A DNA stretch of 63,257 nt, the filler included, from Perkinsus chesapeaki ATCC PRA-425 (taxonomy: Eukaryota > Protista > Perkinsozoa): NCBI GenBank assembly GCA_013115145.1. It is 4 parts of 4 records of this genome, joined end to end, with 100 filler letters (N's around TTAATTAATTAA, not from the genome) between each part and the next. Parts side by side here need not be neighbours in the genome. Positions count along the whole stretch, not along the records: positions 21,191 to 33,476 come from JAAPAO010000816.1; 3 more parts are not named here. The stretch is one strand, 5' to 3'. A program made the position numbers and the translations under genes. Below the pieces are notes generated by a model that saw nothing but the letters and a program-made list of their open reading frames with translations, did no database searches and was not told the origin of the DNA. Shown piece by piece: positions 6,256 through 33,476 of the stretch. Positions within the stretch are counted from its first letter, which is position 1, and each line of letters starts with the position of its first letter.

Positions 6256-6571
6256 AATTATTATACCGAATATTAATATAATAATAACTATAATCAAATT
6301 TTCAACACTCCTCAACTATTTTAATAAAGGTAATAATGAATTTATGAACACACCAATCATTAATAGTAATGATGTTGCGGAGCGAAATCGTTCCAATGTT
6401 CATTGAATCAGCAGTTCTGGGATTCAGCATTGATTCTAGAATCAGATTTTGGGTGTAAAAAGCAGTTCTGGAATCGATTCTGAATTTCAAAATCGTTTTA
6501 TTGAACGACCCTGTTGATACGGCAATGATGATGCTGCAGCAGTTGTTGTTTTTATTATGTATAATAGGGAT

Positions 6572-8153
6572 ATGCATGATAGAAATGGTAGGGGTGGTGG
6601 TTGTTATAATGTTATTGATATATTGAATAAACATAATATAGTAATAAATAATGATGATGATATAACATCATTAATAGATGTATTACAATGGTTTTATAAT
6701 ATATATAATAATAAATATGACATTAATAAGATAACGAATATTGCCTATAAATATAATTATAGGTAATAATAAAAATAATATTGAATGAGAATATTATAAT
6801 AGGAGGCTTGATTTATGGTACGATATTAATAATAAATATAATTTAACATCTTATGAAGGTTTAACATTATTAAAGATGATATATAATGATAGTAATAATG
6901 AATATTAATATTATTCAGGACCATACATATTGTTCAGGAAAGATTGATGCGATTAATATAGCATTTAACAACAACACCACCAAGAACAGCAGAAGCAGCA
7001 GCAGCTCTATTGCGACTACTTATCCTCAACAACATCATTATACAATATCATTAAATGATATTATTGGTAGTAATAATAGTAATATTATTAATCTATTATT
7101 TATATATTAGATGTATTAAATATACATAATAACAATGATAAAAGAAGTAAAGTATGGAGAAATATATTATTTAATAATAGACAAGATAACAGCAACATCA
7201 AGTAATAATAACATGTACTATATCGTCGTGATTATCGTTTAGTTCATCATTATATCGTAAAGAGTTGTATAATAGATTTATTAATGATGTTAATATTGAT
7301 ATATATGAAGATAATGAAGATAATAATTTAATAATAAGAGACCTTAATCGTAATGATGATCTATACTATTACTATAATAATTATATTATTTATCATCAGG
7401 TACTATGCAGGATATACCATTATTTAATAATAGACAAGATAATAAAACATCAAATGGTATAAAAGATAATATAAAAAGGATATTATTAGTTTATAGTAAA
7501 TTAAATGATATTAAATATGTACAAGGTATGAATCAATTATGTTGTTTATTATATTATATATTACTTGATGAATCTGATACATTCTGGGCATTACGATATA
7601 TATTAGATGATATTAAAGATATTTATATAAAAGAATGTGATAATACTGATGATGGAATGTAATAATAATAATAATGTTCTTCTTCTTCTTGTTCGTGTTG
7701 GATGATGATGATGATGATGTAGATATAATAAAGTTGATGAAATAAGACATTTATTAGTGAAATATGATCCACAATTATACAAGTAGTATTAATATCATTA
7801 TTTATTGTATTACTATTATTAGGCATTTTGATGATATTGGTGTTAATAAAGTATTAATAACAATAATAATAAGATGGTTAAGTACATTATTTACATTGGA
7901 TATAAATGGCATAAATAATATATTATTAATATGGGATATATTAATAGTAGCTACTAGATGTAATAAATTATCATCTTATTCGTTATCTTTATCAACTATA
8001 TTCATAATATTGAAAAGATATAAATTATTAAATAATAATGATAATAATAGAGCATTAGAAATATTATCATCGATGAATGATGATAATACTAATATTACTG
8101 ATTTAATATGGTTGAGTGTATGTATCATGATAATCGATTTTAATAATAGATAA
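6572..8153 (+). CDS. TBC-domain Rab GTPase-activating protein (multi-exon)
   Basis: SKVWRNIL, IIRDLNR (IxxDxxR), IKRILLVYSKLNDIKYVQGMNQLCCLLYY (YxQ finger), DTFW, IIRWLSTLF, LLIWDIL. A 41-nt intron at 7202-7242 joins the frames. Confidence 0.85.
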
Positions 8154-8268
8154 TATTATTATTTCATTATTATATGTATTATTACTATTGTGGTGTTCAA
8201 CATAAAACATAATATTATAATGTGTAAATAAGAAACGTATGTAAGGAACATTACACTTGTTGTTATTA

Positions 8269-10767
8269 TCACCATCTACCAGGAACAATAATAGGCTCAT
8301 CGTTGTATCTGGTGATCATGATGATGTTATCATATTATTATTATTATTAGTATAATAATTGTTATTATTATTACTTTCCAGCAACACCATCTTTACCCAT
8401 TTCTATTCTAGCAGCACCACCAGCAGCAGATTCCCCTATAATAGTATCAGAACCAGGCAATTCACGTGAATCGTAACTAATAATAGCATTGTTATAAATA
8501 TATTATTATACTTACGGTCTTAATGATTCCAACCATTCAGAATCTGTTCTATCTCTAATATTCTCAAAATCAATAAGTTCACCATCTAGTGTTTGTACCT
8601 AATAATACCTATTAATAATAATACAGGAGGATGAGAATGAGGAGGAGTTATATTAATAATAATACATATAATGCATTATCAGCTATTGGCATTGGTGACT
8701 TTAATGATAATATATCTGAATACCTAATAATAGTATCATCACAATTCTTAATATACCAGGATTTAGTTAGTATTATTACTCTAATGAATAATATCCCCAT
8801 TCTGTTATACCTAATGCAACTTCAAGCTCATATGGTGTTGCTATTGATGTCATATATTCATTAGTATCCCATATAAAGCTCTCAGGGCATGATAACATTA
8901 CATAACAATCAATTTCAGGAAAATTAGCTAATTTAGCAGGTTCACTTTGACCAACATTAAATATATATACTTCACCTATCATGCATAACATTATTATTAT
9001 TATACTTATCATTATATAATTAGAAAGAATAATAAAATCATTATTATTATACTTATCATTATATAATTAGAAAGAATAATAAAATCATNNNNNNNNNNNN
9101 NNNNNNNNNNNNNNNNNNNNNNNNNNNNNNNNNNNNNNNNNNNNNNNNNNNNNNNNNNNNNNNNNNNNNNNNNNNNNNNNNNNNNAAGAATAATAAAATC
9201 ATTATTATTATACTTATCATTATATAATTAGAAAGAATAATAAAATCATTATTATTATTACGTCCAGCATCTATTAGTTCATTTTTAATACGTTTTAATA
9301 ATTGATCTTGATTGGGTACATCAACTGATCCAAATAATATACCAATTTTACGACCCTTTTTAACCTAATAATCAATAATAATAACCACGATCATTAAATA
9401 TGATTATGAGTATGATGTTACTACTTCTTCTATTAGACGATATCTTTGCATTTCAAATGTCATGGATGATGATGAATTTAATGATGAATAATCCCAGGAT
9501 AATAATGTACAATTATTATTTATTTTACTAACATTATTATTATTAACAATAATAACATATTATTATTACGTATTAAGCAATAACCTAGGCCATAATGATG
9601 ATGTATTAATATCACCAATGAATATAACAATATCCTCTCCATCCACATTACTATTATCGTATTCATCATCATTAATATTAATACTAATAATATAATTATA
9701 TACCAACTTATACTTATACACTTAATATTATATTCCATATTATTACATTTCTCTTCCACAACAATATTTAACATCATTCCTTTCCTTTGCTTCTTCTTCT
9801 TCTTCGTCTACTCCTTTATTATTCATAATAATAGAATCAGCCATTAATTTAGCTAATGGTCCAGATGATTTGAAAACCTCTATACTAGGGCATAATGGCA
9901 GCGTATCATCATCATTATCATTCCTCTTCGTCTTCCTCTTGTTACATTTATTATTACTAGGTATATATTTATTACAGGATTTACATACAAATACATTAAT
10001 AATATTATTATTTAACTTATCAATATTTTGTAATTCCTGATTGTTATTAATAATAATATTAACCATAATATCCAAGTATAATAATTATTACCTTTCCGAA
10101 TGACATCTCAATATCACTATCTTGTGTATCCCATAATAATAATACCTACTTATACAATGATAATAACAACAACGTAAGTCGTAATAACAACAATACAGTC
10201 ATAACTACTTTATATTTATTATTATCACTCTTCCTTTCATTGTTATTATTAATCCATTTTATTATTTCATTATATAATGTATTAGCATTATTATTATATT
10301 CTATATTATTGATATTATAACAGTAATATGTTGGTATTCTTCGTGGCATAGTATGACAACTATGTCCAAAATGTATCTAACTATTCTTATTCTTATTATT
10401 CCTATTAATATTATTATTACTATACAATGAGCTGCATAATGTTCAGCATTAACTTCATCTACACAGCATGATCCTTGTTTAGTATCACCAATAATCTATT
10501 AAAGGCTGTTGTTGTTATTATTAATACATGTTAATTATTATTACAAATACTTCCCTATTTGGTAACCTATTAGATAGTTCTTTACATATACTTGTCCCCC
10601 TATAATAATAGTATCATTACCACCATCCACCCATATCATCATCATTACTACCTTATTAACATGTCATCTGGTAATTGTAATGCTATCCTTTCATAATCAT
10701 TATTAATTATCCAATCAACTATATTCTTCAAATATAGCCCTGAGTATCCTTCATTATTATCCTTCAT
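8269..10767 (-). CDS. DPH2: Diphthamide biosynthesis protein 2 (multi-exon)
   Basis: RIALQLPD, GDTKQGSCCVDEVNAEHY, HFGHSC, PAKLANFPEIDCYVMLSCPE...TPYELEVAL, C-terminal GKDGVAG..RYNDE. The KLANFPEID..V.L.CPE pattern fits DPH2 rather than DPH1. Confidence 0.9.
8992..9256. repeat. About 47-nt intronic tandem repeat in DPH2 around an N-gap
   Basis: ATTATTATTATACTTATCATTATATAATTAGAAAGAATAATAAAATC units. Confidence 0.85.
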
Positions 10768-14029: not shown

Positions 14030-14294
14030 GTATTATAATACTTGGTTTTATTGGTAATAGTAGTAATGTATTATAATACTTGGTTTTATTGGTAATAGTA
14101 GTAATGTATTATAATACTTGGTTTTACTGGTAATAGTAGTAATGTATTATAATACTTGGTTTTATTNNNNNNNNNNNNNNNNNNNNNNNNNNNNNNNNNN
14201 NNNNNNNNNNNNNNNNNNNNNNNNNNNNNNNNNNNNNNNNNNNNNNNNNNNNNNNNNNNNNNTACTGGTAATAGTAGTAATGTATTATAATACT
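14030..14294. repeat. 38-nt intergenic tandem repeat around an N-gap
   Basis: GTAATAGTAGTAATGTATTATAATACTTGGTTTTATTG units. Confidence 0.85.
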
Positions 14295-14417
14295 TACATA
14301 ATGTTAGACATTTTTATCAAATGAAGAGTTTATTATTAATATTAAATAGTTTTGTCTAGTTGTAGTGTTATTTTAATAATATATCTGTATTTAATAATAA
14401 TATATTTGTTCAATATT

Positions 14418-15013
14418 ATGGTTTCAACAGATAGTAAGTACAATGGTTTACACAATATTAAGTAAGCTGCTGTTGTTATTATTAAATATTGGTAATTATA
14501 GGTTTAGACCCCCTTTAATACGGGAGATAATAAGGAATATTATTAAAGATAAGATTGATGATACAGTTAATAAATATCCTATATATAATCATGATGGTAG
14601 TAATTATTATAGTACTTGATAATAATGGTATTAGTTTATGGTGAATTAAGTAAAGTATTATCTGAAGATATTAAGAATAGAGTGATAGCTGATATTAATA
14701 ATAATCAACAATCCCAACATTTACCACCACCACGTTATAAGATATTACTCGAGGTAGTAATAATAATAATAGTAATAATAATATTATTAATAGGTTATAA
14801 TAGGAGAATACCGTGGACAAGGTATAAGGATATCATCTAAATGTTTATGGGATAATAATATGGATAATATAGCCACAGATACATATATTAAGGTAATATA
14901 AGTAGGAATAGAGAGGAAGAAGAGGGTTATTATTATTATAATAGTGATATTATTATAATTATTAGGATAATGTCATGTGTATTGTTATTGTATATGGTAT
15001 ATATACATATTAG
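14418..15013 (+). CDS. Tctex1-domain dynein light chain (TCTEX1D2-like), about 5 exons
   Basis: Spliced reading FRPPLIREIIRNIIKDK...LSKVLSEDIKNRV...PRYKILLE|VIIGEYRGQGIRISSKCLWDNNMDNIATDTYIK|DNVMCIVIVYGIYTY*. Confidence 0.85.
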
Positions 15014-15092: not shown

Positions 15093-17130
15093 ATGATATT
15101 ATTGTTTAATAGTAGTTTATTACAGAGGAGTATTATCAATAATAGCAAGTATAATAAATATTGTCATAATATATTCATATATAGTAACATATATTCATAT
15201 AATAGATTATCAATAACACCAGTATCCCCCAATCCTCATCCTCATCATCATCATCGTCCTCCTCCTGATCATTATTATTCAACTATGACTACTACTACCA
15301 ACAGCAGCAGCAAGAAGGAGAAGGAGACGCTTGTGGTAGTGCATGATGATAATATGATACTACCAGATGGTATTAAGTTGAAAGATGATATTATTAATGC
15401 ATATCCTTTATTTAAAAATGATGTTATATCATATTTAAATGATATGCTAACAATAAAACAATTATCATTATCATCTGAATTAAAGGATAATATCATTGAC
15501 TATTATGCACAATGTTTGGATTATACAACTAAAGTAACAATAACAACAATAATAATAATGTACTTATTACTATTAGGATGGTAAATTAAATCGTGGTACC
15601 AGTTTAGTAGCAGCTTTTGATATATTAAATAATAATAATAATAATAATAATAATAGAGAAATAGCATTAAAGTTAGCGTGGTGTGTTGAAGTGTTACAGG
15701 TAGTAATAATTATAATGTGTGCTTCTTGTTGTTGTTTATTATTATTATTATTATTATCAGAGTCATTTCCTAACATTAGATGATGTTATGGATTCTTCTT
15801 TAACTCGTAGAGGTAAGCCATGTTGGTATTTATTATCTAATATTGGTATATCCAATGCTGTTAATGATGGGACATTCTTATATTCAATAATATATCCAAT
15901 AATAAGGAAAATATCTAATAATAAATCATGGTATTAATAATATAGAGTATTTGTTATTATTAATATAGGTTCATCGATGTTATTGATATATTTGCTGATG
16001 TTGAACAATATACGACTATAGGGCAACATTTAGATGTTAATGCTGGTATACATAATAAAAAAGAATATAATAAGGAGAAAGATAATACAAAAGACAACAG
16101 CAGTAAGAATGAAGAGGAGGAGGGTGAAATACAAAGGTAGTATTATTATTATTTATGATTATTATGTTATCTATTATTATATTGATTATTATGTTATCTA
16201 TTATTATATTGATTATTATGTTATCTATTATTATATTGATTATTATGTTATCTATTANNNNNNNNNNNNNNNNNNNNNNNNNNNNNNNNNNNNNNNNNNN
16301 NNNNNNNNNNNNNNNNNNNNNNNNNNNNNNNNNNNNNNNNNNNNNNNNNNNNNATTATTATATTGATTATTATTATTATTCTTTAGATTCAATACTATTG
16401 CATTGTATAAAACTTCATTTTATACATATTATTTACCAGCATCAGTTGGTGTCTTAGTAAGTGAGGATGAAGATGCTAAATCATATTTACCAATAATAAA
16501 AGATGTAATAATGTAGATAATAATAATGAAGTTGTTGTTGTTGTTGGAATAGATCAATGATATTATTATTAGGTATGTATAAGATTAGGGGTTTATTTTC
16601 AAGCACAAGATGATTATTTGGATTGTTATGCTACACCTGAAGTACTCGGAAAAGTAATGTTAATATTCAATCCTTGGTAGTAGTTATTGTTATTATAATA
16701 ATTAGATTGGCACCGATATAGAAGAATGTAAAGCATCATGGCTATATTGTACAGCGATTGATGTCCTTAATAATAATAATAATCAAGTAATAATTATTAT
16801 TAATAATGTTATAATATTATTATATTATTATCATAATAATAATAAGGTACTACTTGATGAATTGGTTGAAATATATAAAAAGGTTGATAAAACAGCTGAT
16901 GATGTCGCGAAGGTCAAGGATATGTATAAAAATGAACCATTAAATATGGAGAGACGTTTTAAAGAATATGAAGATAAATCTAAAAAAGAAATAGATGATA
17001 TAATATCTAATGTAATAATAATATATAATATAGTTGTATTATACACTATTATTAATAATAGATACCACATAATGGAGTCAAAGCATTATTAAATTATATG
17101 CTAAGTAAGACATATAAAAGGCGCATGTAG
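15093..17130 (+). CDS. FPPS: Farnesyl diphosphate synthase (multi-exon) with N-terminal extension
   Basis: [15 protein letters not shown]|[23 protein letters not shown] (first DDxxD), [34 protein letters not shown] (second motif), GK|[14 protein letters not shown]-terminal KTYKRRM*. Confidence 0.95.
16150..16370. repeat. 27-nt intronic tandem repeat in FPPS around an N-gap
   Basis: GATTATTATGTTATCTATTATTATATT units. Confidence 0.85.
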
Positions 17131-21190: not shown

Positions 21191-22817
21191 TAGGAAGATA
21201 TTTGGTCAGCAGTGCCGATGGTGGCAACAGTTGGGCATATTATGTACCTAAGGAACGATGGGCGTTTAGGTGCCTAATGTTACGTAGTGCGCACAGGAAG
21301 CTGCGACATGCAAGTCGGAACGCCACAGTAGAGAGAGCCATTGAATTTGGATTCTTTGCGCCATCTCTACGAAGGCTGGCAAACGATGTGCTGGCAGTAT
21401 GCGTCACATGCCAACTGAAGAACGCCAAGCGAGAATGGAGAATTCTGCCCGGGATCGCAGGAACGGGAGTCTCTGATTTATCGCCACAAAGTTTGCTGAA
21501 GAATGGCAAGGAACCGTTTTATGCGGTATCGGTGGACGCTATTACTTTGGGGTCAGGCCTTCTCTATTTATCGGTGGTCTGCCTAATGACATACAGTGTG
21601 GTTGGGGTGGCAATACCTGACCAGACGTCATCAAGTATCGCAGCGGCCATCAGACGAGCTCAGAGGAGAGAAGGGGGCTTCGCTGTAATAGTGGCCGATA
21701 ATGCGATCGCGAGAGATTCAGTGGCGAGAGATTCAGTGGCGAGAGATCCTGAGATAGCTGGATGGAATATCAAGTTTATACCAGCAAATCCAAGAGCACC
21801 ATGGACGACAGCAGCTGAGACTCATCATCGCAGCGCGGTTCGAGTCGCACGGATTATTCTGAGAAAGTATAGAGTATCCGATTGGAATCATGAAACGATG
21901 GCGACATTAAAGCAGGAGCTGGCTGATGAGATAACTTGGACGCTGAACAGGACGCCACTATCGTCGGCGGACATTAATGACCAAGGATATATCAGAGCTC
22001 TGACTCCGGATGATTTGAGGTATGGTTACATCCGCAGAGAGGGAGGCGGAGCTACGCTGATGGATAATGAGGTATCCTCTGAGGTAAGCAAATCCGAAGG
22101 TAAGTGGCTGAGGCGGCGGGAAGCAAATCTCCGGCGATTTTTGAACGATTTTTGGCCAGAGAAGCGCCGCAAAGTATTAGCATCATTGGGGCGAACGGAA
22201 TCAGTGAAGAAGGATTTTACTTTTCGAGTTGGAGATCCGGTGATGATTTATCAGCCGAGTCGGAAACATGATATGCTTTGGCGGACGGGCTGGATAGTGC
22301 AGTGTATTAGCACACGACGCTATCGAGTGCGTATCGTTGGAGGTAGAGGTGAGCGCATTACAGAGGAGAACCACTACAATTTATGCCCCCTGGAAATGCG
22401 ACGAGATTATGATGATATGCCACTTCCTGATAGAGCTGGAATGAGGATAAGATGCAGACTAACGCACGAAGATGGATCGCTACAGCATCACTGGGGTACC
22501 ATAGTTAAAGATTTGGCAGAGAAGGTACTCGTTTGCTGGGATGTATCGGATCCAGGACAGAGCGCGTTTGAGATGTTGAAGTTGGAAGAAGAAGACTGGG
22601 ACTTTGGTGATTCAGAAGTCGACACTTCCGAGAGGGAGGCGTGTCGCGGCACCGAATGAATCTATCATTTGGTGGCGAGCGCGAATCTAATCTTCCGGAT
22701 GCGGCATGAAGATATCTTGAAGATTGTATATGATTGATGTATTGACGATTGTGTTTCATTGTCGTAGTTCATTGGTAATGAACCGCATGCCGTGTAAACC
22801 GTAGCCTATTTGGCTCA
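21191..22817 (+). mobile_element. 3' part of a BEL/Pao-like LTR retrotransposon (integrase, putative PPT and putative 176-bp 3' LTR)
   Basis: Integrase ORF runs off the contig start. Purine tract GAGAGGGAGG at 22630-22639, then TG at 22642 and a CA at 22816-22817 next to the junction with host coding sequence. The 5' LTR is not in the window. Confidence 0.7.
21202..22659 (+). CDS. Retrotransposon pol C-terminus: H2C2 zinc finger + rve integrase + DUF5641-like + Tudor-like domain (5'-partial)
   Basis: HRKLRH...CVTC; VSVD...ADN...AETHH (D,D,E); BEL-type KFIP..APW, LNRTPL...LTP, FWPE..., GDPV...W.TGWI...LCPLE. Confidence 0.9.
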   Translation: MVSSADGGNSWAYYVPKERWAFRCLMLRSAHRKLRHASRNATVERAIEFGFFAPSLRRLANDVLAVCVTCQLKNAKREWRILPGIAGTGVSDLSPQSLLKNGKEPFYAVSVDAITLGSGLLYLSVVCLMTYSVVGVAIPDQTSSSIAAAIRRAQRREGGFAVIVADNAIARDSVARDSVARDPEIAGWNIKFIPANPRAPWTTAAETHHRSAVRVARIILRKYRVSDWNHETMATLKQELADEITWTLNRTPLSSADINDQGYIRALTPDDLRYGYIRREGGGATLMDNEVSSEVSKSEGKWLRRREANLRRFLNDFWPEKRRKVLASLGRTESVKKDFTFRVGDPVMIYQPSRKHDMLWRTGWIVQCISTRRYRVRIVGGRGERITEENHYNLCPLEMRRDYDDMPLPDRAGMRIRCRLTHEDGSLQHHWGTIVKDLAEKVLVCWDVSDPGQSAFEMLKLEEEDWDFGDSEVDTSEREACRGTE

Positions 22818-22819
22818 AG
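22798..22819 (+). other. Spliced-leader-like 22-mer ACCGTAGCCTATTTGGCTCAAG
   Basis: 20/22 identical to the dinoflagellate SL (DCCGTAGCCATTTTGGCTCAAG) and 19/22 to the P. marinus long SL as recalled (ACCGTAGCCATCTTGGCTCAAG). Followed by GG rather than GT, so not a canonical SL RNA gene. Confidence 0.85.
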
Positions 22820-22820
22820 G

Positions 22821-23598
22821 GACTTGTATTTTTTGCTCCACATCATGTCTAGTCGCGTTGGAGAACAGCTTGAGGATACAAAGACGGCCGAACACGACAC
22901 AGGGATTCCACGACGAAGATAACGAAAGAAAACTTCATCTCTCTTATTGATACCAATCGGATATTACGTGTCATGGAATGCTGCTTGACAAAGCTGGCTA
23001 CTTCGAAAACACACCAGAGGCGTTTGAAATAGTCACTTGACCAAAGTACAAGGAGCTCATTGGAACGGGCAAGATATGAACTGAGACCCCATATACCACG
23101 AAGCTTTGATACTTGATCAGTCTGGCATATACAACATTTATCAAGAAATACCATACTATCAATATAACCCGGCAATCGACATCCATAGAATAACGATAAT
23201 AGAAATGATAGAAGGGATGTTAGATACGCTATTAAAAAAGATAGGCTACTCGATAGTGTAGTGGACAGGCACGTTATAATGAATAATAGTGCGGAGTTCG
23301 CCACAATGTACGCCAGTCCTTTGTATTGAGCCATTGCCAATGCGATGTGCTTGAGAGTTGGATTGGCAGACCAAGAGTGGCTAACAAACGAATCCAACTG
23401 TCTGACCGGCCTTGAAAGGGCATATGTATCATCTGCGCCAACTGAATCTTTTAGAATATGCCTTTGATGGACAATCGTACTCAAAGGAACACCCCGAAGA
23501 AGTGACAGTGAGCCCGACGCATCCATAATCCTGTCTATTACATCCTTACGGCAAAGGACTTCTATCATTTCAATTTCGTCGACCACTTCTTCATTCAT
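22821..23598 (-). pseudogene. Truncated/chimeric HET/TIR-like membrane gene copy interrupted by the retrotransposon
   Basis: 22922-23631 is near-identical to 24782-25491. It continues into diverged paralog-like sequence (1-nt frameshift; VFGRLCILKLFSNATRHDVEQKIQ) up to the element end. Confidence 0.75.
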
Positions 23599-24042
23599 AC
23601 GTGCCACAAAAAGTAAACTGGAAAAGGCAAGATATTCACCTACTTACGACCCTTTTCTGAAGTACTCAGTTTTACCGATGTCTATGCAGTGGAACGAATG
23701 GATCTAACAGCAGCTAAAGGGTATGAGACCCCTACTCTTCCGGCCGGGAATATTGTGAAGCACATTAACTCAAAACCGTGTGAGGACGGAAATCATCAGT
23801 AAGTAGAATCAGGACGGGGGAGGAGCGGCAGTCTATTGCACAACAACTTCTCACTCAACAAGTGACAACGAACGTATAGGCTTGGCGTCACCAAGCCACT
23901 AAATAGTATGGACTGCCGCAGTACGGCAGTTATCGGAGGGAAATAATATAATGGTCGTCATTGAGCAAAAAACAACATTTGCCAACGACGTCGTGAACAC
24001 GCCTTTGCGGGGCTCATACCACATAAAGTAGATAGACATAAT

Positions 24043-25458
24043 TTATCGACACATGAGAAAGACAAGAAACAGTACCAGTAGCGGTATAATACACGTAGCT
24101 GAGGCGTAGTGCTCTGGGATAATACTCACCAAAGAGGTGTCGAATAGAATACATCCTCCAGCGACCAACATTATGAGCTCGTAAAGGGCGGCTATGGCAA
24201 CCATTCCGGCAGCCGCAATTGGTTTTGGTATGTGCCTAACCTCAAACAGCTTGTAGGTCACAAAGACTAGGAATGGTAAACGGCAGAGCAATAATACCAT
24301 TGTTGAAGCTAAGCAACGTAGAATTACCCACCATTGGGGGCCGCCAAACGGTACTGTGCTACAGCAGCATACCATCATACGACCAACACATGCCAGTTCC
24401 ATTGGGAGAGATGTTATAGCAAACGTGAAGAAGCCGATTGTCCAGGGACGATTCCGATTGGTAATGTACTCTTTGTTATCCCTAACGTATCTCTCGAAGG
24501 ATTCCAGCGACCCATACCAATTTCTAATAACCTCGTGAATGAGCAGCTTGTCCTCTTCAAGTGAGCATTCTCCATCATCAACACTGAATTGGCTGACTTG
24601 TCGGTCTAAGTCCAACCTATGAGGCAAATACTCGTAAACAATAGCCAGTCCCCAGCAACTTGCCAAGAGCAAGCTGACCCTCAACATCCCTAAATAGTAC
24701 GGCCGTTTCACAGAGGCTTCAAAGCTGAGGATATGAAGAATAGAAATGGTCACGACGGCCAGAACTTCAATGGTGAAAAAGACGAAAGAAAACTTCATCT
24801 GTCTTATTGATACCAATCGGATATTACGTGTCATGGAATGCTGCTTGACAAAGCTGGCTACTTCGAAAACACACCAGAGGCGTTTGAAATAGTCACTTGA
24901 CCAAAGTACAAGGAGCTCATTGGAACGGGCAAGATATGAACTGAGACCCCATATACCACGAAGCTTTGATACTTGATCAGTCTGGCATATACAACATTTA
25001 TCAAGAAATACCATACTATCAATATAACCAGGCAATCGACATCCATAGAATAACGATAATAGAAATGATAGAAGGGATGTTAGATACGCTATTAAAAAAG
25101 ATAGGCTACTCGATAGTGTAGTGGACAGGCACGTTATAATGAATAATAGTGCGGAGTTCGCCACAATGTACGCCAGTCCTTTGTATTGAGCCATTGCCAA
25201 TGCGATGTGCTTCAGAGTTGGATTGGCAGACCAAGAGTGGCTAACAAACGAATCCAACTGTCTGACCGGCCTTGAAAGGGCATATGTATCATCTGCGCCA
25301 ACTGAATCTTTTAGAATATGCCTTTGATGGACAATCGTACTCAAAGGAACACCCCGAAGAAGTGACAGTGAGCCCGACGCATCCATAATCCTGTCTATTA
25401 CATCCTTACGGCAAAGGACTTCTATCATTTCAATTTCGTCGACCACTTCTTCATTCAT
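24043..25458 (-). CDS. HET/TIR-like domain multi-pass membrane protein (copy A), intronless
   Basis: FVSHSW-[TM hairpin]-FLDKCCICQTD...SNELLVLWSSDYFKRLWCVFE, followed by several hydrophobic helices. The ORF track starts at GTG 25467; the first ATG is at 25458. Confidence 0.8.
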   Translation of the reverse strand: MNEEVVDEIEMIEVLCRKDVIDRIMDASGSLSLLRGVPLSTIVHQRHILKDSVGADDTYALSRPVRQLDSFVSHSWSANPTLKHIALAMAQYKGLAYIVANSALLFIITCLSTTLSSSLSFLIAYLTSLLSFLLSLFYGCRLPGYIDSMVFLDKCCICQTDQVSKLRGIWGLSSYLARSNELLVLWSSDYFKRLWCVFEVASFVKQHSMTRNIRLVSIRQMKFSFVFFTIEVLAVVTISILHILSFEASVKRPYYLGMLRVSLLLASCWGLAIVYEYLPHRLDLDRQVSQFSVDDGECSLEEDKLLIHEVIRNWYGSLESFERYVRDNKEYITNRNRPWTIGFFTFAITSLPMELACVGRMMVCCCSTVPFGGPQWWVILRCLASTMVLLLCRLPFLVFVTYKLFEVRHIPKPIAAAGMVAIAALYELIMLVAGGCILFDTSLVSIIPEHYASATCIIPLLVLFLVFLMCR

Positions 25459-25592
25459 ACGTGCCACAAAAAGTAAACTGGAAAAGGCAACACATTCTAT
25501 GAAGGCAAGCCAGATACAATTTTACGAGACTCTCCTTACGACTCATGTTTATTGTGTACAATATGTGAAATAGTTTTTACAAGAAAGTTAAA

Positions 25593-25648: not shown

Positions 25649-26023
25649 ATTCTACTAAAAATTCAGTCATAAATGTGACTTTCACATCGCACACGGTCAA
25701 CGACAGCGCAATCTAGGCTGCATCCTTTCAGTTGAATAGATTCCTTATCGGGATATCTGCGACCGTTTCTTAATCGCTTATTAAGACTGCGTCTTATGGT
25801 GCAAGAAGCTGCTCAGAGGCATAAGCGAATTCAAATGATTTCAATGCTCTTGAGGAAGTTTTGGTATAAAGCATTTTTGAGATCTTTACGAAAATGCTTT
25901 GAATTAGGCCTAAGGGTTACGAAGCCGCATCTTCGTTGCTTAGACAAGCAACTTCTTGCATACACTTCCTTCCAAAGCTTTTCTAGAGTTTGCGCAATCG
26001 TTACTCCCATCAGCTGCTTTCCA

Positions 26024-27259
26024 ATGGAAGCTTGGCTCAGCTCAGCAGACCTCGTCCGCCAAGTGGCATCGTCTTTGTATCAATCAGACGTGTGCAGTTT
26101 GTGGCGAACCTGTAAAACTGCCCGGGAACACCTTCGTGTCGATGGCCTGCTTTGGGTGCCAAATATTTTCCTACTCAATAGCGGAGATACCGCAAGATGC
26201 CTCGCTGAAGTGCACCCGGACTCTGTACAGTTTATGCGTATCGCCTTGTCTAAGTGCCGAGACGCTGCTATTCTGTTGCCATTCGCGCCTCACTTGAAGG
26301 GTTTGGGTATTGAACTCAGCAGCGCCTATTTACTAGAGGTCCTCACCGAGCAACTTCACGGTCATCTCGGGAAACTCGATCGGCTATGGGTGGAGTTCAT
26401 CGGTCACAGTCTAGCCCTGGACGGATCCATTGCTTCCCCAACGTCGATCGACGACAACATCGCTCTTCTAGGAAATGACTGTAGAGAAGTTTATGTGGCG
26501 TGCATTGGTGGCAGCATGCCTCTTCGCATGACCGCTAAAATAGGCACCAAGGTCACGAGGCTCACACTGGCCGGTAAATTCGGTGCTCGCACTCTTGAGC
26601 GCCTGAGCTGCCTTCCTCGTAACCAACTCATCTGCCTTGATCTAGCCAGGTGCCATTTGCCGCAGCGTCAGCCATTAGCGGCTTTTGCGGAAATTATTGA
26701 GTCTCATTCGGAGTCATTGAGCTATATGTCGTTCAAGTGCTCTCCTGTACCGAATGTATCAGAGATTCTGGGCGTTAGCGGAAGGCATCCACGATTGGTG
26801 TGTTTTATGAAACTTGTACGTGACCACGAAGAAGTTGTGTCGATTACTGTTTCCGATCTATCCCCTCGCGCAACATTTAGTGCCTCGTCTGGCAGTCGGG
26901 CTAAGTGCTTTGATCGATACGATCATTTGCAACTGCTCGGATGGGACGCATTTGGTGTGTTCGCCGCTACCTTCGGGAACTTGAAGTTCCGAACAGTGGA
27001 GGATATGTGGGCAGCTCTGAGCAGCGAATCACGGCACATAGTGGACTTGATGGCCAGCCGGATAAATGGGCAATACAACGAATATCGGAAACTGGTGCCG
27101 GCGGCAGGCACAGGACAGCCTGGTTTCGAGTTGTCTATGTCGAGCGACTCCGAGTCGGATATTACCGAGCTAAGTTCCTCGTGGCGTAGCGCTAGCGACA
27201 GGTTAGACTCTTCCTCATCAGAGGAGAGTGACGAATCAACGTCTTCCGATGGAGAGTAG
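26024..27259 (+). CDS. F-box-like/LRR-like protein with acidic Ser-rich tail; intronless
   Basis: MEAWLSSADLVRQVASSLYQSDVCSLWRTCK resembles an F-box. LxxLxL repeats follow (LKGLGIEL, LDRLWVE, VTRLTL, LICLDLARC). ATG 26024 follows a TTTTCTAG acceptor. Confidence 0.55.
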   Translation: MEAWLSSADLVRQVASSLYQSDVCSLWRTCKTAREHLRVDGLLWVPNIFLLNSGDTARCLAEVHPDSVQFMRIALSKCRDAAILLPFAPHLKGLGIELSSAYLLEVLTEQLHGHLGKLDRLWVEFIGHSLALDGSIASPTSIDDNIALLGNDCREVYVACIGGSMPLRMTAKIGTKVTRLTLAGKFGARTLERLSCLPRNQLICLDLARCHLPQRQPLAAFAEIIESHSESLSYMSFKCSPVPNVSEILGVSGRHPRLVCFMKLVRDHEEVVSITVSDLSPRATFSASSGSRAKCFDRYDHLQLLGWDAFGVFAATFGNLKFRTVEDMWAALSSESRHIVDLMASRINGQYNEYRKLVPAAGTGQPGFELSMSSDSESDITELSSSWRSASDRLDSSSSEESDESTSSDGE

Positions 27260-27707: not shown

Positions 27708-29111
27708 CTAGGCAGAGAAATGGGTCCACTTCAGCAGACCCAATGTTATGAACGGAAGTACGACCATGATCCATGCACATGGACGGACCGCAAATAGCAA
27801 TACTGTTGGCGAGTCAAATAGAAAAAAGGCTGCTTGCCCGGAGACGAACATCAATGCGCCATATGAAATGCCCAGTAATAAGATGATGAGCAGGATTATA
27901 CTTCTACCGAGAAATGTTTCACTGCCGAAGGCCCGGACGAGGCGGTACGAAGCCACCGTGAAAAGGGGCGTCCGACACATAAGCAGAATACTAACAGTTA
28001 TTGTGTCCCGGAGTATGATGTACCACGAATAACCAAGATCAACTTCAAGGCTAAAGGAAGAGAGACTCGCCGCAAGCCGAGGCCAGAAAACCAGTATATA
28101 GGGAAACATCACGACGCCTGCTACTTCCCTCGGCAAGGCGTCCTCTCGCTTTCTCATCATACTCCTCATACACGACCAACTATTCCGTACACAATCATTA
28201 AAGCTCCTATCTGAACCATACCACTCGTTTATTCGCAACCTTAGCATTTCGGTGTCTTCACTGAAGGTACACTCCGCTTCATCTACGGAGAACCTTTGTA
28301 CCTGCTTCTTCAGTGCCAACTTCGCGGGAACAAAGTAGAGGAGGACAATTAGACATACACCAACAGACATAAATACTTCAAAGAGAAAAAATACAATCGG
28401 GGGGGTCCAGGATTTCATGAGTTCCTCACATGGAGTTGGTATATAGAGCACCTCAATGACCAAAAGCCCTAAAATTTCTACCATGGCGATCAGATGTGCC
28501 AAGCGTGAAGTTAATATGGAGTAGCACCTGATGGAGCTCACGTTGTGGATATGGAGGAAGTTGGCATACTCAAAGACACACCAAAGCCTCGAGAAGTACT
28601 CGGGCGTCCAAAGGATAAGCAGCGTATCAGATCGATTAAGGTAGGCTTCCATGTTCTTCAACCCTTCCCTCTTCGCCTTCTCGTCAACTTGAGGTATACA
28701 GCATTTATCAAGGAACACCATTTTCTTGTTGGTTCGGCTTGGGATTAGATAACCAAACCACATACCGAGAAACATGGCAAACACACCGAGTACTTCCGTG
28801 GCTACAACAGCCTCTCTCTTGTAAGCGGGTAAGAAGTAAATACCGACTGATAATGGTATAACAGTGAGGAGCATTGCAATATAACCAAACTTGACATACA
28901 GAACGGTAACGAGCGTCATGTGCTTCCAGAAAGGGCTACCAGACCATGAGTGACTCAGAAATTCATCCAAGCTCTCGACTGGTTTAGACAACCTGTATGA
29001 TTCATCTGACGGCTTTGAAGTGCGCAACAAATACCATCTCCGAGTAACATCGTGTAAGTATACACCTCTCGTAGGCATCTCGCCTAGCTCGGCACTAGGT
29101 TTCAATGTCAT
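27708..29111 (-). CDS. HET/TIR-like domain multi-pass membrane protein (copy B), intronless
   Basis: FLSHSW...FLDKCCIPQVD...SDTLLILWTPEYFSRLWCVFE, FSVDEAEC..ED..LR.RINEWYGS, many TM segments. Confidence 0.8.
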   Translation of the reverse strand: MTLKPSAELGEMPTRGVYLHDVTRRWYLLRTSKPSDESYRLSKPVESLDEFLSHSWSGSPFWKHMTLVTVLYVKFGYIAMLLTVIPLSVGIYFLPAYKREAVVATEVLGVFAMFLGMWFGYLIPSRTNKKMVFLDKCCIPQVDEKAKREGLKNMEAYLNRSDTLLILWTPEYFSRLWCVFEYANFLHIHNVSSIRCYSILTSRLAHLIAMVEILGLLVIEVLYIPTPCEELMKSWTPPIVFFLFEVFMSVGVCLIVLLYFVPAKLALKKQVQRFSVDEAECTFSEDTEMLRLRINEWYGSDRSFNDCVRNSWSCMRSMMRKREDALPREVAGVVMFPYILVFWPRLAASLSSFSLEVDLGYSWYIILRDTITVSILLMCRTPLFTVASYRLVRAFGSETFLGRSIILLIILLLGISYGALMFVSGQAAFFLFDSPTVLLFAVRPCAWIMVVLPFITLGLLKWTHFSA

Positions 29112-31449: not shown

Positions 31450-32793
31450 CTACGGGCTATTCAAGAACAACACCATAGTTGGTGGTCCATAGAAGAAGAG
31501 AACGCCTTGCGCTCCAATAAATTGGCCAACGCTATAAAGCAAGGCGAATGATACGAGAGCTGAGGTACCGAAGCACTTGGCTAGAGTGCTCTTACGTTCT
31601 AGGACACTGCCTGTGCAATACGATATAACAACGAAGAGAGGCACGCGGCATGCAAGCAATACATTCAGCACAAGTGTACTTCGAATAATGAGAGTCCACG
31701 AGTACTCCGGGTATTCGTTGTTCCAGGCTATAGCACACGCCAGACGAGGCCACAGAGCCATTACATATGGAAACATCACGAAGGCTACTACCTGAACCGG
31801 TAATGCCGGATCAGAAATTTTCATTGCGAGGCTTATTCGTGACCAGCTACTCCGTAGACACTCATCAAAGTTTTCCTGTGATCCATACCACTCGGATATT
31901 CGAGAGCTCAGCATTGTAGTATCTTCGGCAAGCGTGCAGTGCGCTGCACTCATTGAAAACTGCTGAATTTGCTTATTCAACTCCCTCTTCGCAGGAAGAC
32001 AGAAGAGAAGCACAATTACACATACACCAACGCTCAATGCGACCTCGGTCACGGACCAGCAAATGGAGGGTATCCACAATTTTATTTGCGAGCCCCTCGA
32101 AATTACGGCGTTTGCGATTTCCACAATGAGAACACACGCGACCTCCCACCAGACAACCACATGATAAAACTGCATGAACCAAGCCGACCAGCACAGAATC
32201 GAGTCGGGTCCATGACTACGAAGGTAGCTAGCCAACTCAAAGACACACCAAAGCCTCGAGAAGTACTCGGGCGTCCAAAGGATAAGCAGCGTATCAGATA
32301 GACTAAGGTAGGCTTCCATGTTCTTCAACCCTTCCCTCTTCGCCTCTTCGTCAACTTGAGGTATACAGCATTTATCAAGGAACACCATTTTCTTGTTGGT
32401 TCGGCTTGGGATTAGATAACCAAACCACATACCGAGAAACATGGCAAACACACCGAGTACTTCCGTGGCTACAACAGCCTCTGTCTTGTAAGCGGGTAAG
32501 AAGTAAATACCGACTGATAATGGTATAACAGTGAGGAGCATTGCAATATAACCAAACTTGACATACAGAACGGTAACGAGTGTCATATGCTTCCAGAAAG
32601 GGCTACCAGACCATGAGTGACTTAAAAATAGATCTAACTTCTCGACTTGTCTCGACAGCTCGTAAGTTTGCCCGGATGCCTCCGAGTTGTAAAATAAATA
32701 ACACCTGGCGGTGACGTTATCCAAAGTGATTCCTCTAATATGAGACTCGAGCACTGGTCTCCCGTTCGACCGGTCCAAAGTTCGAAAATCCAT
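31450..32793 (-). CDS. HET/TIR-like domain multi-pass membrane protein (copy C); premature TAG before last TM helix
   Basis: Same motifs as copy B. The frame continues past TAG 31452-31450 as AWLFVILPIIALVSVYWTHF.. to TGA at 31369. Confidence 0.8.
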   Translation of the reverse strand: MDFRTLDRSNGRPVLESHIRGITLDNVTARCYLFYNSEASGQTYELSRQVEKLDLFLSHSWSGSPFWKHMTLVTVLYVKFGYIAMLLTVIPLSVGIYFLPAYKTEAVVATEVLGVFAMFLGMWFGYLIPSRTNKKMVFLDKCCIPQVDEEAKREGLKNMEAYLSLSDTLLILWTPEYFSRLWCVFELASYLRSHGPDSILCWSAWFMQFYHVVVWWEVACVLIVEIANAVISRGSQIKLWIPSICWSVTEVALSVGVCVIVLLFCLPAKRELNKQIQQFSMSAAHCTLAEDTTMLSSRISEWYGSQENFDECLRSSWSRISLAMKISDPALPVQVVAFVMFPYVMALWPRLACAIAWNNEYPEYSWTLIIRSTLVLNVLLACRVPLFVVISYCTGSVLERKSTLAKCFGTSALVSFALLYSVGQFIGAQGVLFFYGPPTMVLFLNSP

Positions 32794-33476
32794 GAAAAGA
32801 AAGGTCACACGTCACACGTCACACGTCGCACTTCTCATGCCACTACTGGGCTCCGCGGAATGTTTCCAGACTCCCGGCTTCAAGCGCAAGCAGGTGGCAA
32901 GAATGGTATCGAATGATCTTTTCACCATCCTGCTCGGGAGCTACAAAGGTACCAAACCCCATTCGACCACCGGAAGAGGACTCCCCCACGGAGTTATACC
33001 ACCCATTGAAAGGCAGTCATACTGATCGTAACGGGACAGGGCGTGCGGTCAGGCAGCTCCTGGCAAAACTCCTGTGTCTACCCGAGTCAGCTAACCCGAC
33101 TCAGTTTTTTTTTAGAAAAAATGGAGGCTCTACGACTGAAGAATCTGTGGTCTCCTGTTTTTTTTGCGCGCGGGAAAGGCGAAGCACAATGTGCTCACCA
33201 CATGTGAAGATGCGCCTTCTTCCCCGCATCCGTATTGCTCGGAGGAAGAACAGACAGTGAATGTAGTGGGCTCCGCTCAGCGAAGGTGAAATCAGTTCTT
33301 GTCTTGAGCGGCGTGGGTCGCGCCGAAGCACATATTAGTAGCACAATATCTCTGTTGGTTGTTCAATTCTTGCACTGCGTTTCGACTTGCCCCGAATACT
33401 TGGTCTACACCTTTTCAACGCCTATTTCGACAATAGTAACTTCTATTTCGACAGGCGAGCGAGATTTATGTTAAGA

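Follow-up and report, generated by a model that had tools for sequence, protein, structure and literature searches.

A host spliced-leader sequence inside the long terminal repeats of Ty3/gypsy-like retrotransposons of Perkinsus

Ty3/gypsy LTR retrotransposons, such as Ty3 of yeast and Cer1 of C. elegans, carry long terminal repeats (LTRs) of the form TG...CA, a polypurine tract (PPT), a tRNA-type primer-binding site (PBS) and gag and pol in two frames, with the integrase last in pol. Cer1 is also the described element that comes closest to using a spliced leader (SL): SL1 trans-splicing affects only a subgenomic mRNA and not the full-length RNA, and its LTR encodes no SL. In Ty1 of yeast, a copia-type element with integrase before reverse transcriptase (RT) and no spliced leader, the gag start is located in the 5′ LTR, and the gag frame extends over the PBS. 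A different association of retroelements with the SL is found in the non-LTR elements SLACS, CRE and NeSL, which insert into SL RNA genes, so that the SL is target DNA. DNA-encoded SLs are furthermore known as relics in retroposed genes of dinoflagellates and Perkinsus (Slamovits and Keeling 2008, summarised in PMC6050394). For P. marinus, Zhang et al. 2011 (PMC3101222) described >100 intron-less 'SL-like' loci, most of them starting with T, which were treated as non-functional SL RNA-like genes without a link to retrotransposons; the regions downstream of such loci were remarked to be variable. We found no description in the searchable literature of an LTR-retrotransposon clade with the host SL fixed in both LTRs, Cer1 being the nearest case.

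Here we analysed an SL-like sequence within a 63,257-nt stretch of DNA from Perkinsus chesapeaki ATCC PRA-425 (the window), composed of parts of four records joined by filler. The coordinates of all features are collected in Table 1, and related copies are referred to by L numbers. The window contains a Ty3/gypsy-like Perkinsus LTR retrotransposon, of which the 3′ end is visible. A preliminary description had already pointed to the 3′ end of an LTR retrotransposon at this place, in agreement with the PPT, the TG start and the retroviral-type integrase, and the letters it quoted for the purine tract (22630–22639), the TG at 22642 and the 22-mer at 22798–22819 are all present.

Table 1. Features of the element and of the adjoining host genes, in window coordinates
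Feature	Position	Strand	Remarks
C-terminal part of element pol ORF, 488 open codons visible	21193..22659	+	Cut by contig edge at 21191
PPT (purine run 22630–22639 plus CG)	22630..22641	+	Directly 5′ of 3′ LTR
3′ LTR, 226 nt, TG...CA	22642..~22867	+	Right end uncertain by ~3 nt (22864–22867)
Inferred U3, 156 nt	22642..22797	+	TATAT at 22727–22731, 71 nt 5′ of SL
DNA-encoded spliced-leader copy, 22 nt	22798..22819	+	LTR positions 157–178; inferred first bases of R
Rest of R/U5, 48 nt	22820..22867	+	T-rich leader, ATG 22845–22847, ends AACA
Truncated host paralog, TIR-like membrane protein	22849..23607	−	N-terminal half only; frame enters LTR, stop supplied by LTR sequence
Full-length host paralog, 474 aa	24043..25467	−	Uninterrupted comparator for junction

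The pol reading frame, whose last codons and stop fall within the LTR, is 88% identical to a protein of P. marinus, the species that also holds the nearest element copy. It comprises an integrase zinc-binding N-terminal domain, a DDE core, and SH3-like and further beta-rich C-terminal domains. In Pfam, the window ORF gave a weak, sub-threshold match to Integrase_H2C2 (E 4e-4), a family that was found in six of eight relatives and exceeded the gathering score in P0042; RT_RNaseH_2 was weak in four of the eight (best E 2.7e-4), and neither RVT_1 nor rve matched the pol relatives at threshold. PDB sequence searches with single pol proteins and with a profile returned no match, and the UniRef name of P0004 is 'Reverse transcriptase domain-containing protein'. 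These sequence-level searches classified little of pol, and the identity of the integrase was settled by the fold search alone: using the AF2 model of the window ORF (pLDDT 80.8), Foldseek retrieved the PFV integrase (E 1.9e-13) as well as the Ty3 integrase (E 9.7e-12). Residues D115 and D169 are near-invariant among 36 relatives, and every long relative has the integrase region at its C-terminus (for proteins P0010, P0020 and P0023, the source's spliced gene models were taken as they stand). The Perkinsus elements thus resemble Ty3/gypsy elements in having the integrase last in pol, with a fold that is both Ty3-like and retroviral, but differ from them in a pol too divergent for the Pfam RVT/rve models and PDB sequence searches, and in an LTR that holds the host SL. 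Between the window and L001, dN/dS was 0.06, and by this pairwise estimate the window lineage has evolved under strong purifying selection.

On the left, the LTR begins with the sequence TGTCGCGG at 22642 (window, as read). This TG is the true LTR start, as L003 and L005/L007, which are independent insertions in P. olseni, share a start of the form TG(C/T)CGCGGCACCGAATG, outside of which their flanks are unrelated. On the right, similarity to other element copies is lost after ~22864, the terminal CA of the window LTR lies at 22866–22867, and collinear similarity to the host paralog begins at ~22866–22868. The window copy has only its 3′ LTR on the contig, and the right end is therefore defined by the loss of element similarity and the gain of host similarity. 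Upstream of the SL, the window U3 is 77% identical to that of L001 and 66% identical to that of L005, and the copies read have a TATA-like motif 51–71 nt 5′ of the SL. Downstream, 22820–22864 is conserved element sequence (alignments to L001 and L003; P. marinus and P. olseni copies), and the ATG opens a frame reading M-S-S-R-V..., matching the gag start in related 5′ LTRs. Two published primers also align here: the P. marinus primer PmaSLS-like-F4 corresponds to 22833–22856 with one mismatch, and shortSL1a/s to 22843–22863 with three. The part after the SL is 35 nt shorter in the window than in L003 and L005, and of their common end motif it has kept only AACA. These alignments place the SL inside the window LTR, ~48 nt from its end, and not at the junction between element and host.

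The host side of this junction is documented by a second, uninterrupted gene copy. Positions 22922–23640 are ~99% identical to 24782–25500, with weaker collinear similarity extending leftward to 22866. The intervening stretch 22868–22921 was considered as a possible part of the LTR; local alignment found nothing in it resembling the LTR tails of L003 or L006 but a collinear match to the paralog (16 of 500 shuffles reach the score), and we therefore treated it as host DNA. The nearest named homologs of the host paralog come from P. chesapeaki (57%) and P. olseni (45%). As judged from the two paralogs, the element landed in one member of a tandem family of TIR-like genes.

The plus-strand 22-mer agrees with the published DinoSL in 20 of 22 bases (sequence comparison) and differs from Perkinsus PmaSL1 by three substitutions, all in the central block. 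Without its first base, the resulting 21-mer occurs once in the window, and it did not arise by chance in any of 100 shuffles, even when three mismatches were allowed. As had been pointed out previously, there is no GT donor as in an SL RNA gene: the bases directly 3′ of the window SL are GG, and those in other copies are TA (L001, L011), TG (L003) or TT (L006). Neither the window SL nor those of L001, L003, L006 and L011 are followed by the GT donor and conserved intron start of an SL RNA gene, and true P. marinus SL genes read on as GGTA..., according to published 3′ RACE primers. An Rfam search of 22500–23000 gave no match. In 144 kb of retrieved sequence we found 11 SL-like matches, all of which lie in such LTRs except for one chance bacterial match. 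Nine of the ten LTR-borne SLs are exact copies of PmaSL1 or PmaSL2 over 20–21 nt. Their first base is T or G in several LTR copies, whereas functional Perkinsus SLs start with A. When the segments from SL to LTR end of three copies were folded as RNA, the z-scores ranged from −0.2 to +0.9, and no structure emerged other than a small hairpin of the SL itself. A scan of metagenome contigs gave a sole match to the exact 21-mer of the window (L009), which we rejected as a relative and regard as a chance match, since the 21-mer sits in a primase-like ORF of an unrelated contig that has nothing else in common with the window.

An SL at the equivalent internal LTR position was found in L001, L003, L005/L007 and L011, and in both LTRs of L006 and of L008. 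This layout is common to three families with ~40% pol identity. It is exemplified by L006, which has two LTRs of 279 nt (8998–9276 and 15439–15717), 98.9% identical to each other; the SL occupies LTR positions 188–209, and another 70 nt lead to the LTR end. L008, with LTRs at 1–213 (cut by the contig start) and 6376–6654, is a second insertion of the L006 family; its LTR end is identical in place and its flank is different. In both of these complete P. olseni relatives, the 70 nt beyond the SL end in ...AACA. In the window's own family, 83 nt separate the SL from the PBS in the independent insertions L003 and L005, and the block of U3, SL and leader forms the 5′ LTR in L003 and L005 and the 3′ LTR in the window and L001. 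The third family, represented by L011 of P. marinus, shows the order PPT, TGTC, 125-nt U3, SL, 23 nt and ATG. Between families, U3 is 49–58% identical, which is near background, compared with 91–100% for the SL.

All LTRs start with TGTC or TGCC, and those of L003, L005, L006, L008 and L004 end in ACA. The tRNA-type PBS TGGTGACAGCTG, which begins with TGG, abuts the LTR end in L003, L005, L006 and L008 (two families), and that of L004 comprises 28 nt with complementarity to the 3′ end of a tRNA that extends into the T arm. When we looked for the primer tRNA gene, ARAGORN reported only a tRNA-Val(AAC) in L005/L007, the 3′ end of which does not match the PBS. A G-rich tract followed by CG precedes TGTC in L001, L006, L008 and L004, and a G-rich tract followed by CA is present in L011. 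As for target site duplications (TSDs), L004 has GGGG on both sides (4 bp, clean), L006 has only three shared bases (TTA), and the 5′ end of the window element is off the contig. Related complete copies have gag and pol in two frames, and in L005 and L006 a long gag-like open stretch continues in the frame of the first ATG beyond the SL. In L005, this ATG lies 28 nt after the SL and its frame stays open through the LTR end and the PBS, similar to the arrangement of Ty1. The SL is not a feature of all relatives: L004, from a more distant family (27% pol identity), has a normal LTR, PBS and PPT and no SL, and a search for the SL in the distant relatives L004, L012 and L013 found none, although L012 is uninformative in this respect, its contig ending 95 nt into the LTR. 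Among the few copies read, the SL type goes with the host species, with a T-starting 21-nt form in two P. marinus families and a 22-nt form in two P. olseni families, a pattern more readily explained by exchange between families or with a host pool than by simple vertical inheritance.

The SL probably marks the U3/R boundary, where the element RNA starts. From the layout described above we infer that R starts with the SL and that trans-splicing gave rise to it, as well as any function it may have at present. We consider it likely, as an overall explanation, that these are elements whose LTR-internal SL is the start of R and goes back to trans-spliced RNA that was copied into both LTRs. An element RNA with the SL at its 5′ end would have been reverse-transcribed and, since the 5′ end of the genomic RNA by definition becomes the U3/R boundary of both LTRs, the SL would make up the first 21–22 nt of R. 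It would then form part of the homology for the first strand transfer and double as the 5′ leader of the gag mRNA. Indeed, related 5′ LTRs run from SL to leader, gag ATG, ...AACA and PBS, so that the DNA 3′ of U3 resembles a mature trans-spliced mRNA at its 5′ end. Capture from trans-spliced element RNA, one of the origins suggested in the preliminary description, would be the most economical source of an LTR-encoded SL.

That description had gone further and equated the SL with R/U5 and the very end of the LTR, at the junction with antisense host DNA only a few bases away, where it would supply the terminal CA, serve as integrase att site and abut the PBS. In its favour, both the PPT and the TG at 22642 exist, the last bases of the SL are CA-AG, and a host ORF is cut short close by. 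The SL is nevertheless followed by 45–48 nt of conserved element sequence, with host similarity only from ~22866, and the LTRs of L006 and L008 run on for 70 nt to the same AACA in two different flanks, those of L003 and L005 for 83 nt. Accordingly, no copy with a visible end stops at GGCTCA, the expected order of SL, AG and TGG (PBS) was never seen, the PBS always coming 70–83 nt after the SL, and a TSD predicted to begin with AGGGA falls inside the LTR. It is thus extremely improbable that the SL is the LTR terminus, U5 or an att site, or that it provides the terminal CA. We find it equally hard to credit that the 22-mer has nothing to do with the element, being the SL relic at the 5′ end of some retroposed host cDNA or a fragment of an SL RNA gene next to the element, even though such relics of retroposed mRNAs are frequent in dinoflagellates and have been reported in Perkinsus. 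The block of U3, SL and leader recurs at both ends of one family (5′ in L003 and L005/L007, 3′ in the window and L001) and in both L006 LTRs; neither a GT donor, an intron nor an Rfam match accompanies the SL; and the plus strand 3′ of it holds 48 nt of element followed by an antisense host gene. In a retrogene with an SL relic, the SL would lie upstream of a host gene on the same strand, whereas in the 5′ LTRs studied here it precedes the element's own gag. The likeness to relic SLs (PMC6050394) is that a DNA-encoded SL stands just 5′ of a 5′ UTR and start codon and is best explained by reverse-transcribed trans-spliced RNA; the differences are that in Perkinsus LTRs it is the retrotransposon's own RNA that would have been copied, that the SL sits in both LTRs behind U3, and that it is inherited across families rather than being a one-off event.

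Two further possibilities concern how the SL is maintained. It could be a leader encoded in cis that today functions in its own right, trans-splicing no longer taking place and transcription starting at or near its first base; selection would then retain it for its use as R homology, a host-mRNA-like leader, an Sm-type site or a core promoter element. Such a role is in line with the non-canonical first bases (T, G), with the persistence of the window variant under purifying selection and with the TATA-like motif 51–71 nt upstream, and retained SLs have been proposed to play a part in the promoters of dinoflagellate retrogenes. The SL type, however, tracks the host species and not the element family in the few copies read, and we regard a purely cis-encoded leader as possible, if somewhat unlikely. 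Alternatively, the SL might be renewed in each generation, if transcripts started in U3 and the terminal AG of the encoded SL acted as trans-splice acceptor, a fresh SL replacing the encoded one exactly. This could account for 9 of 10 LTR-borne SLs being exact over 20–21 nt while U3 is at background between families, as well as for an SL type that follows the host species and for an SL that ends in AG. Such renewal is made doubtful by a first base that is often not the A of functional SLs and by the lack, here, of the truncated relic behind a new SL that has been described for dinoflagellate relic-SL acceptors. Moreover, the window SL keeps its three substitutions under strong purifying selection, suggesting that the exact SL is not indispensable and arguing against constant renewal.

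Like SLACS, CRE and NeSL, the Perkinsus elements associate a retroelement with the SL; they differ in that the SL belongs to the element itself, that it comes without an SL gene intron, and that LTRs and an integrase are present. What appears new, by the searchable literature, is an LTR-retrotransposon clade of a trans-splicing protist with the host SL as a fixed internal part of both LTRs, at the expected start of the genomic RNA. The published S-type SL-like primers (PMC3101222) match the bases after the SL in the window and hence represent the same sequences, found here as LTRs beside pol, PBS and PPT. Judging by these matches, LTRs explain at least part of the >100 intron-less 'SL-like' loci of P. 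marinus, which matters for SL-based counts of retrogenes and for the annotation of Perkinsus genomes.

Because R begins with the universal 5′ tag of host mRNAs, it is also conceivable, though in our view rather improbable, that a host cDNA ending in anti-SL could switch onto the SL of the 3′ LTR and thereby gain the U3 promoter and an integrase-recognised end, with the SL renewed in each cycle via its terminal AG. If true, such switching would be a route to forming and expressing the SL-tagged retrogenes of perkinsids, possibly also of dinoflagellates, and would fit the published variability downstream of SL-like loci. More generally, the SL would provide a natural sequence tag for the U3/R boundary, and this brings the long-standing question of which reverse-transcribing elements handle trans-spliced RNAs in dinoflagellates and perkinsids within reach of ordinary RNA data.

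A purine run (22630-22639) followed by CG, the sequence TGTCGCGG starting at 22642 and an SL-like 22-mer at 22798-22819 can all be read in the window, as quoted in the preliminary description. Without its first base, the SL 21-mer occurs once in the window; none of 100 shuffles contains it, even at up to three mismatches. Compared with the sequences printed in published papers, 20 of the 22 bases are identical to the dinoflagellate SL (DinoSL), and three substitutions, all in the central block, separate the 22-mer from the Perkinsus SL PmaSL1. The two bases after the SL are GG; the lack of a GT donor had thus been described correctly, and since a search of Rfam with this region also gave no match, we rejected an SL RNA gene. 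A host retrogene relic and an SL-gene-targeting non-LTR element were likewise rejected as identities of the SL element.

The ORF that accompanies the SL encodes a protein with 88% identity to a P. marinus hypothetical protein and 84% to one of P. olseni. Sequence profiles of this ORF detected a weak integrase zinc-binding domain and nothing else, PDB sequence searches returned no match, and at E 0.001 it had 89 relatives among 1.84 billion representative proteins; in all long relatives the matching part was C-terminal. An alignment of 36 relatives revealed two near-invariant aspartates (D115 and D169), and the AlphaFold model (pLDDT 80.8) matched the integrases of prototype foamy virus (E 1.9e-13) and Ty3 (E 9.7e-12), so the ORF forms the integrase end of a highly diverged pol of retroviral type. 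For the RT part of pol, we found weak RNase H matches and the source-database name, and nothing beyond. The last 488 codons of pol, which are those visible in the window, contain no stops or frameshifts and a single in-frame 15-nt tandem duplication. This duplication (21709-21738) is perfect, doubles five residues and sits after the second catalytic Asp but before the position where the Glu is expected. Between the window pol and L001, a P. marinus copy of the same family, dN/dS was 0.06 at a dS of about 1; both lineages have evolved as functional elements.

Features of the window and LTRs of L006, a P. olseni copy of a second family
Feature	Position	Strand	Remarks
pol C-terminal ORF (integrase)	21193-22659	+	488 open codons, cut at contig edge
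Window 3′ LTR	22642 to about 22867	+	226 nt, TG...CA, SL at LTR positions 157-178
Truncated host ORF	22849-23607	-	reads into LTR, stops inside LTR
TIR-like multi-pass membrane protein paralogs (four in tandem)	22849-23607, 24043-25467, 27708-29111, 31450-32808	-	first cut by LTR
487-aa ORF among paralogs	25796-27259	+	no Pfam match; serine- and acid-rich C-terminal tail
L006 LTRs	8998-9276 and 15439-15717		279 nt each, 98.9% identical

The junction with host DNA lies about 48 nt further along than the position right after the SL at which it was originally placed. The 45-48 bases that follow the SL are part of the element rather than the host, because in L001 the same T-rich leader extends beyond the SL up to the contig end, because primers for a repeated P. 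marinus 'S-type SL-like' family (Zhang et al. 2011, PMC3101222, Table 1) match the window at 22833-22856 (1 mismatch) and 22843-22863 (3 mismatches), and because the same block is present at the 5′ end of P. olseni copies of this family (L003 and L005/L007), in the order start motif, U3, SL, leader and ATG. L003 and L005 are separate insertions, since they have unlike upstream genes and flanks. The two become similar exactly at TG(C/T)CGCGGCACCGAATG, and the same motif at window 22642 confirms the left LTR boundary and the preceding PPT as first proposed. On the right, similarity to other element copies fades out after about 22864, and from 22866 on the sequence aligns collinearly with the uninterrupted paralog (gene 24043-25467), at a score reached in 16 of 500 shuffles; together these place the LTR end at about 22867. 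The bases beyond this end (22868-22921) do not resemble the LTR tails of L003 or L006. After the SL, the window LTR has 35 nt less than L003/L005, which may reflect an internal deletion or a damaged end.

The host paralogs match TIR_2 weakly in Pfam, and UniRef gives a P. chesapeaki homolog the name 'TIR domain-containing protein'. Positions 22922-23640 are about 99% identical to 24782-25500, and identity falls sharply to about 60% on the left side of 22922, a pattern that points to a recent gene conversion or a partial duplication among the paralogs.

The full extent of the LTR was seen in L006 and L008, two complete or near-complete P. olseni copies of a second family with about 40% pol identity to that of the window. 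Each L006 LTR carries the SL at positions 188-209 and continues for 70 nt to its end, ...AACA; the 3′ LTR of L008 has the same end and a different flank. The SL is therefore neither the LTR terminus nor the att site or U5 that it had been taken for. Nor does the PBS directly follow the SL-AG, as had been expected of full-length copies: TGGTGACAGCTG lies directly after the 5′ LTR in the L006/L008 family, and 83 nt after the SL in L003 and L005. This 12-mer is a genuine tRNA-type PBS, because L004, an SL-less member of a more distant family (27% identity), has a 28-nt PBS complementary to a tRNA 3′ end including the T arm. The LTR of L004 (206 nt, clean 4-bp duplication) is preceded by a G-rich tract and CG and starts with TGTC, as in the SL-bearing elements. 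Its LTR pair (9696-9900 and 14103-14308) is nested between a second pair of direct repeats (8739-8979 and 14662-14902; 241 nt, 98.8% identical), which may indicate insertion into another repeat or element. The same G-rich tract and CG followed by TGTC is present at about 4930-4945 in L012, an ENA metagenome contig with a distant relative that ends 95 nt further on. Overall, LTR pairs, TG...CA ends, PBS, PPT and an integrase fold identify an LTR retrotransposon with the integrase last, upholding the kind of element first proposed, one that has taken in a spliced leader.

The SL is internal to the LTR and recurs across families. In L011, a P. marinus scaffold carrying a third family (integrase about 41% identical), a G-rich tract, TGTC, a 125-nt U3, the SL, 23 nt and an ATG precede an assembly gap; a Tc3-type transposase HTH gene (7863-8633) lies about 1.4 kb upstream of its pol. 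Within 144 kb of fetched sequence, all SL-like matches with up to three substitutions fell in LTRs of this group save one, an exact copy of the window 21-mer variant within a primase-like coding region (2512-2532) of an unrelated metagenome contig, which we rejected as a chance hit and which calls for caution in SL-based metagenome screens. Between families, U3 is 49-58% identical, the background for such alignments, and the SL 91-100%. In the copies read, the SL type follows the host: two P. marinus copies from two families both have the 21-nt type with T as first base, and all P. olseni copies, from two families, the 22-nt type. Both L006 and L008 contain a pair of long open stretches (586 and 1481 codons) in different frames, as is usual for gag and pol. 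In L005 there are two open stretches and the 3′ end is truncated, and L003 is broken into five of at least 150 codons; both lack a 3′ LTR. U3 length varies within the family, as L003 carries 63 nt (9763-9825) that are absent from L005.

The U3/R boundary of any LTR element is the 5′ end of its genomic RNA. In these elements, the DNA after U3 resembles a mature trans-spliced mRNA, with the SL, a 23-70 nt leader and the first ATG, which in L005 and L006 is in frame with a long gag-like stretch running across the LTR end and PBS. The SL is thus probably the start of R. In the simplest account, an SL-bearing element RNA would have been reverse-transcribed, normal LTR regeneration would place the SL at the start of R in each LTR, and it would there contribute to the homology used in the first strand transfer. 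As to how the RNA 5′ end would arise today, the SL may be a cis-encoded leader, in line with the non-canonical first bases of the SL copies and with the persistence of the three-substitution variant of the window in a selected lineage. Alternatively, trans-splicing at the terminal AG of the SL itself may renew it, in line with the exact SLs that nine of ten LTR copies carry and with the agreement of SL type with host species.

Literature searches for LTRs with an encoded SL found none. In P. marinus, more than 100 SL-like loci, intron-less and mostly with T at the start, have been described (Zhang et al. 2011, PMC3101222), and at least some of them are LTRs of this kind. The Caenorhabditis elegans element Cer1 differs in that SL1 is added to its spliced subgenomic mRNA only and not to its full-length RNA, whereas the Perkinsus LTRs themselves encode the SL. 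The mechanism of these SL-containing LTRs is open to testing by ordinary RNA-end data.
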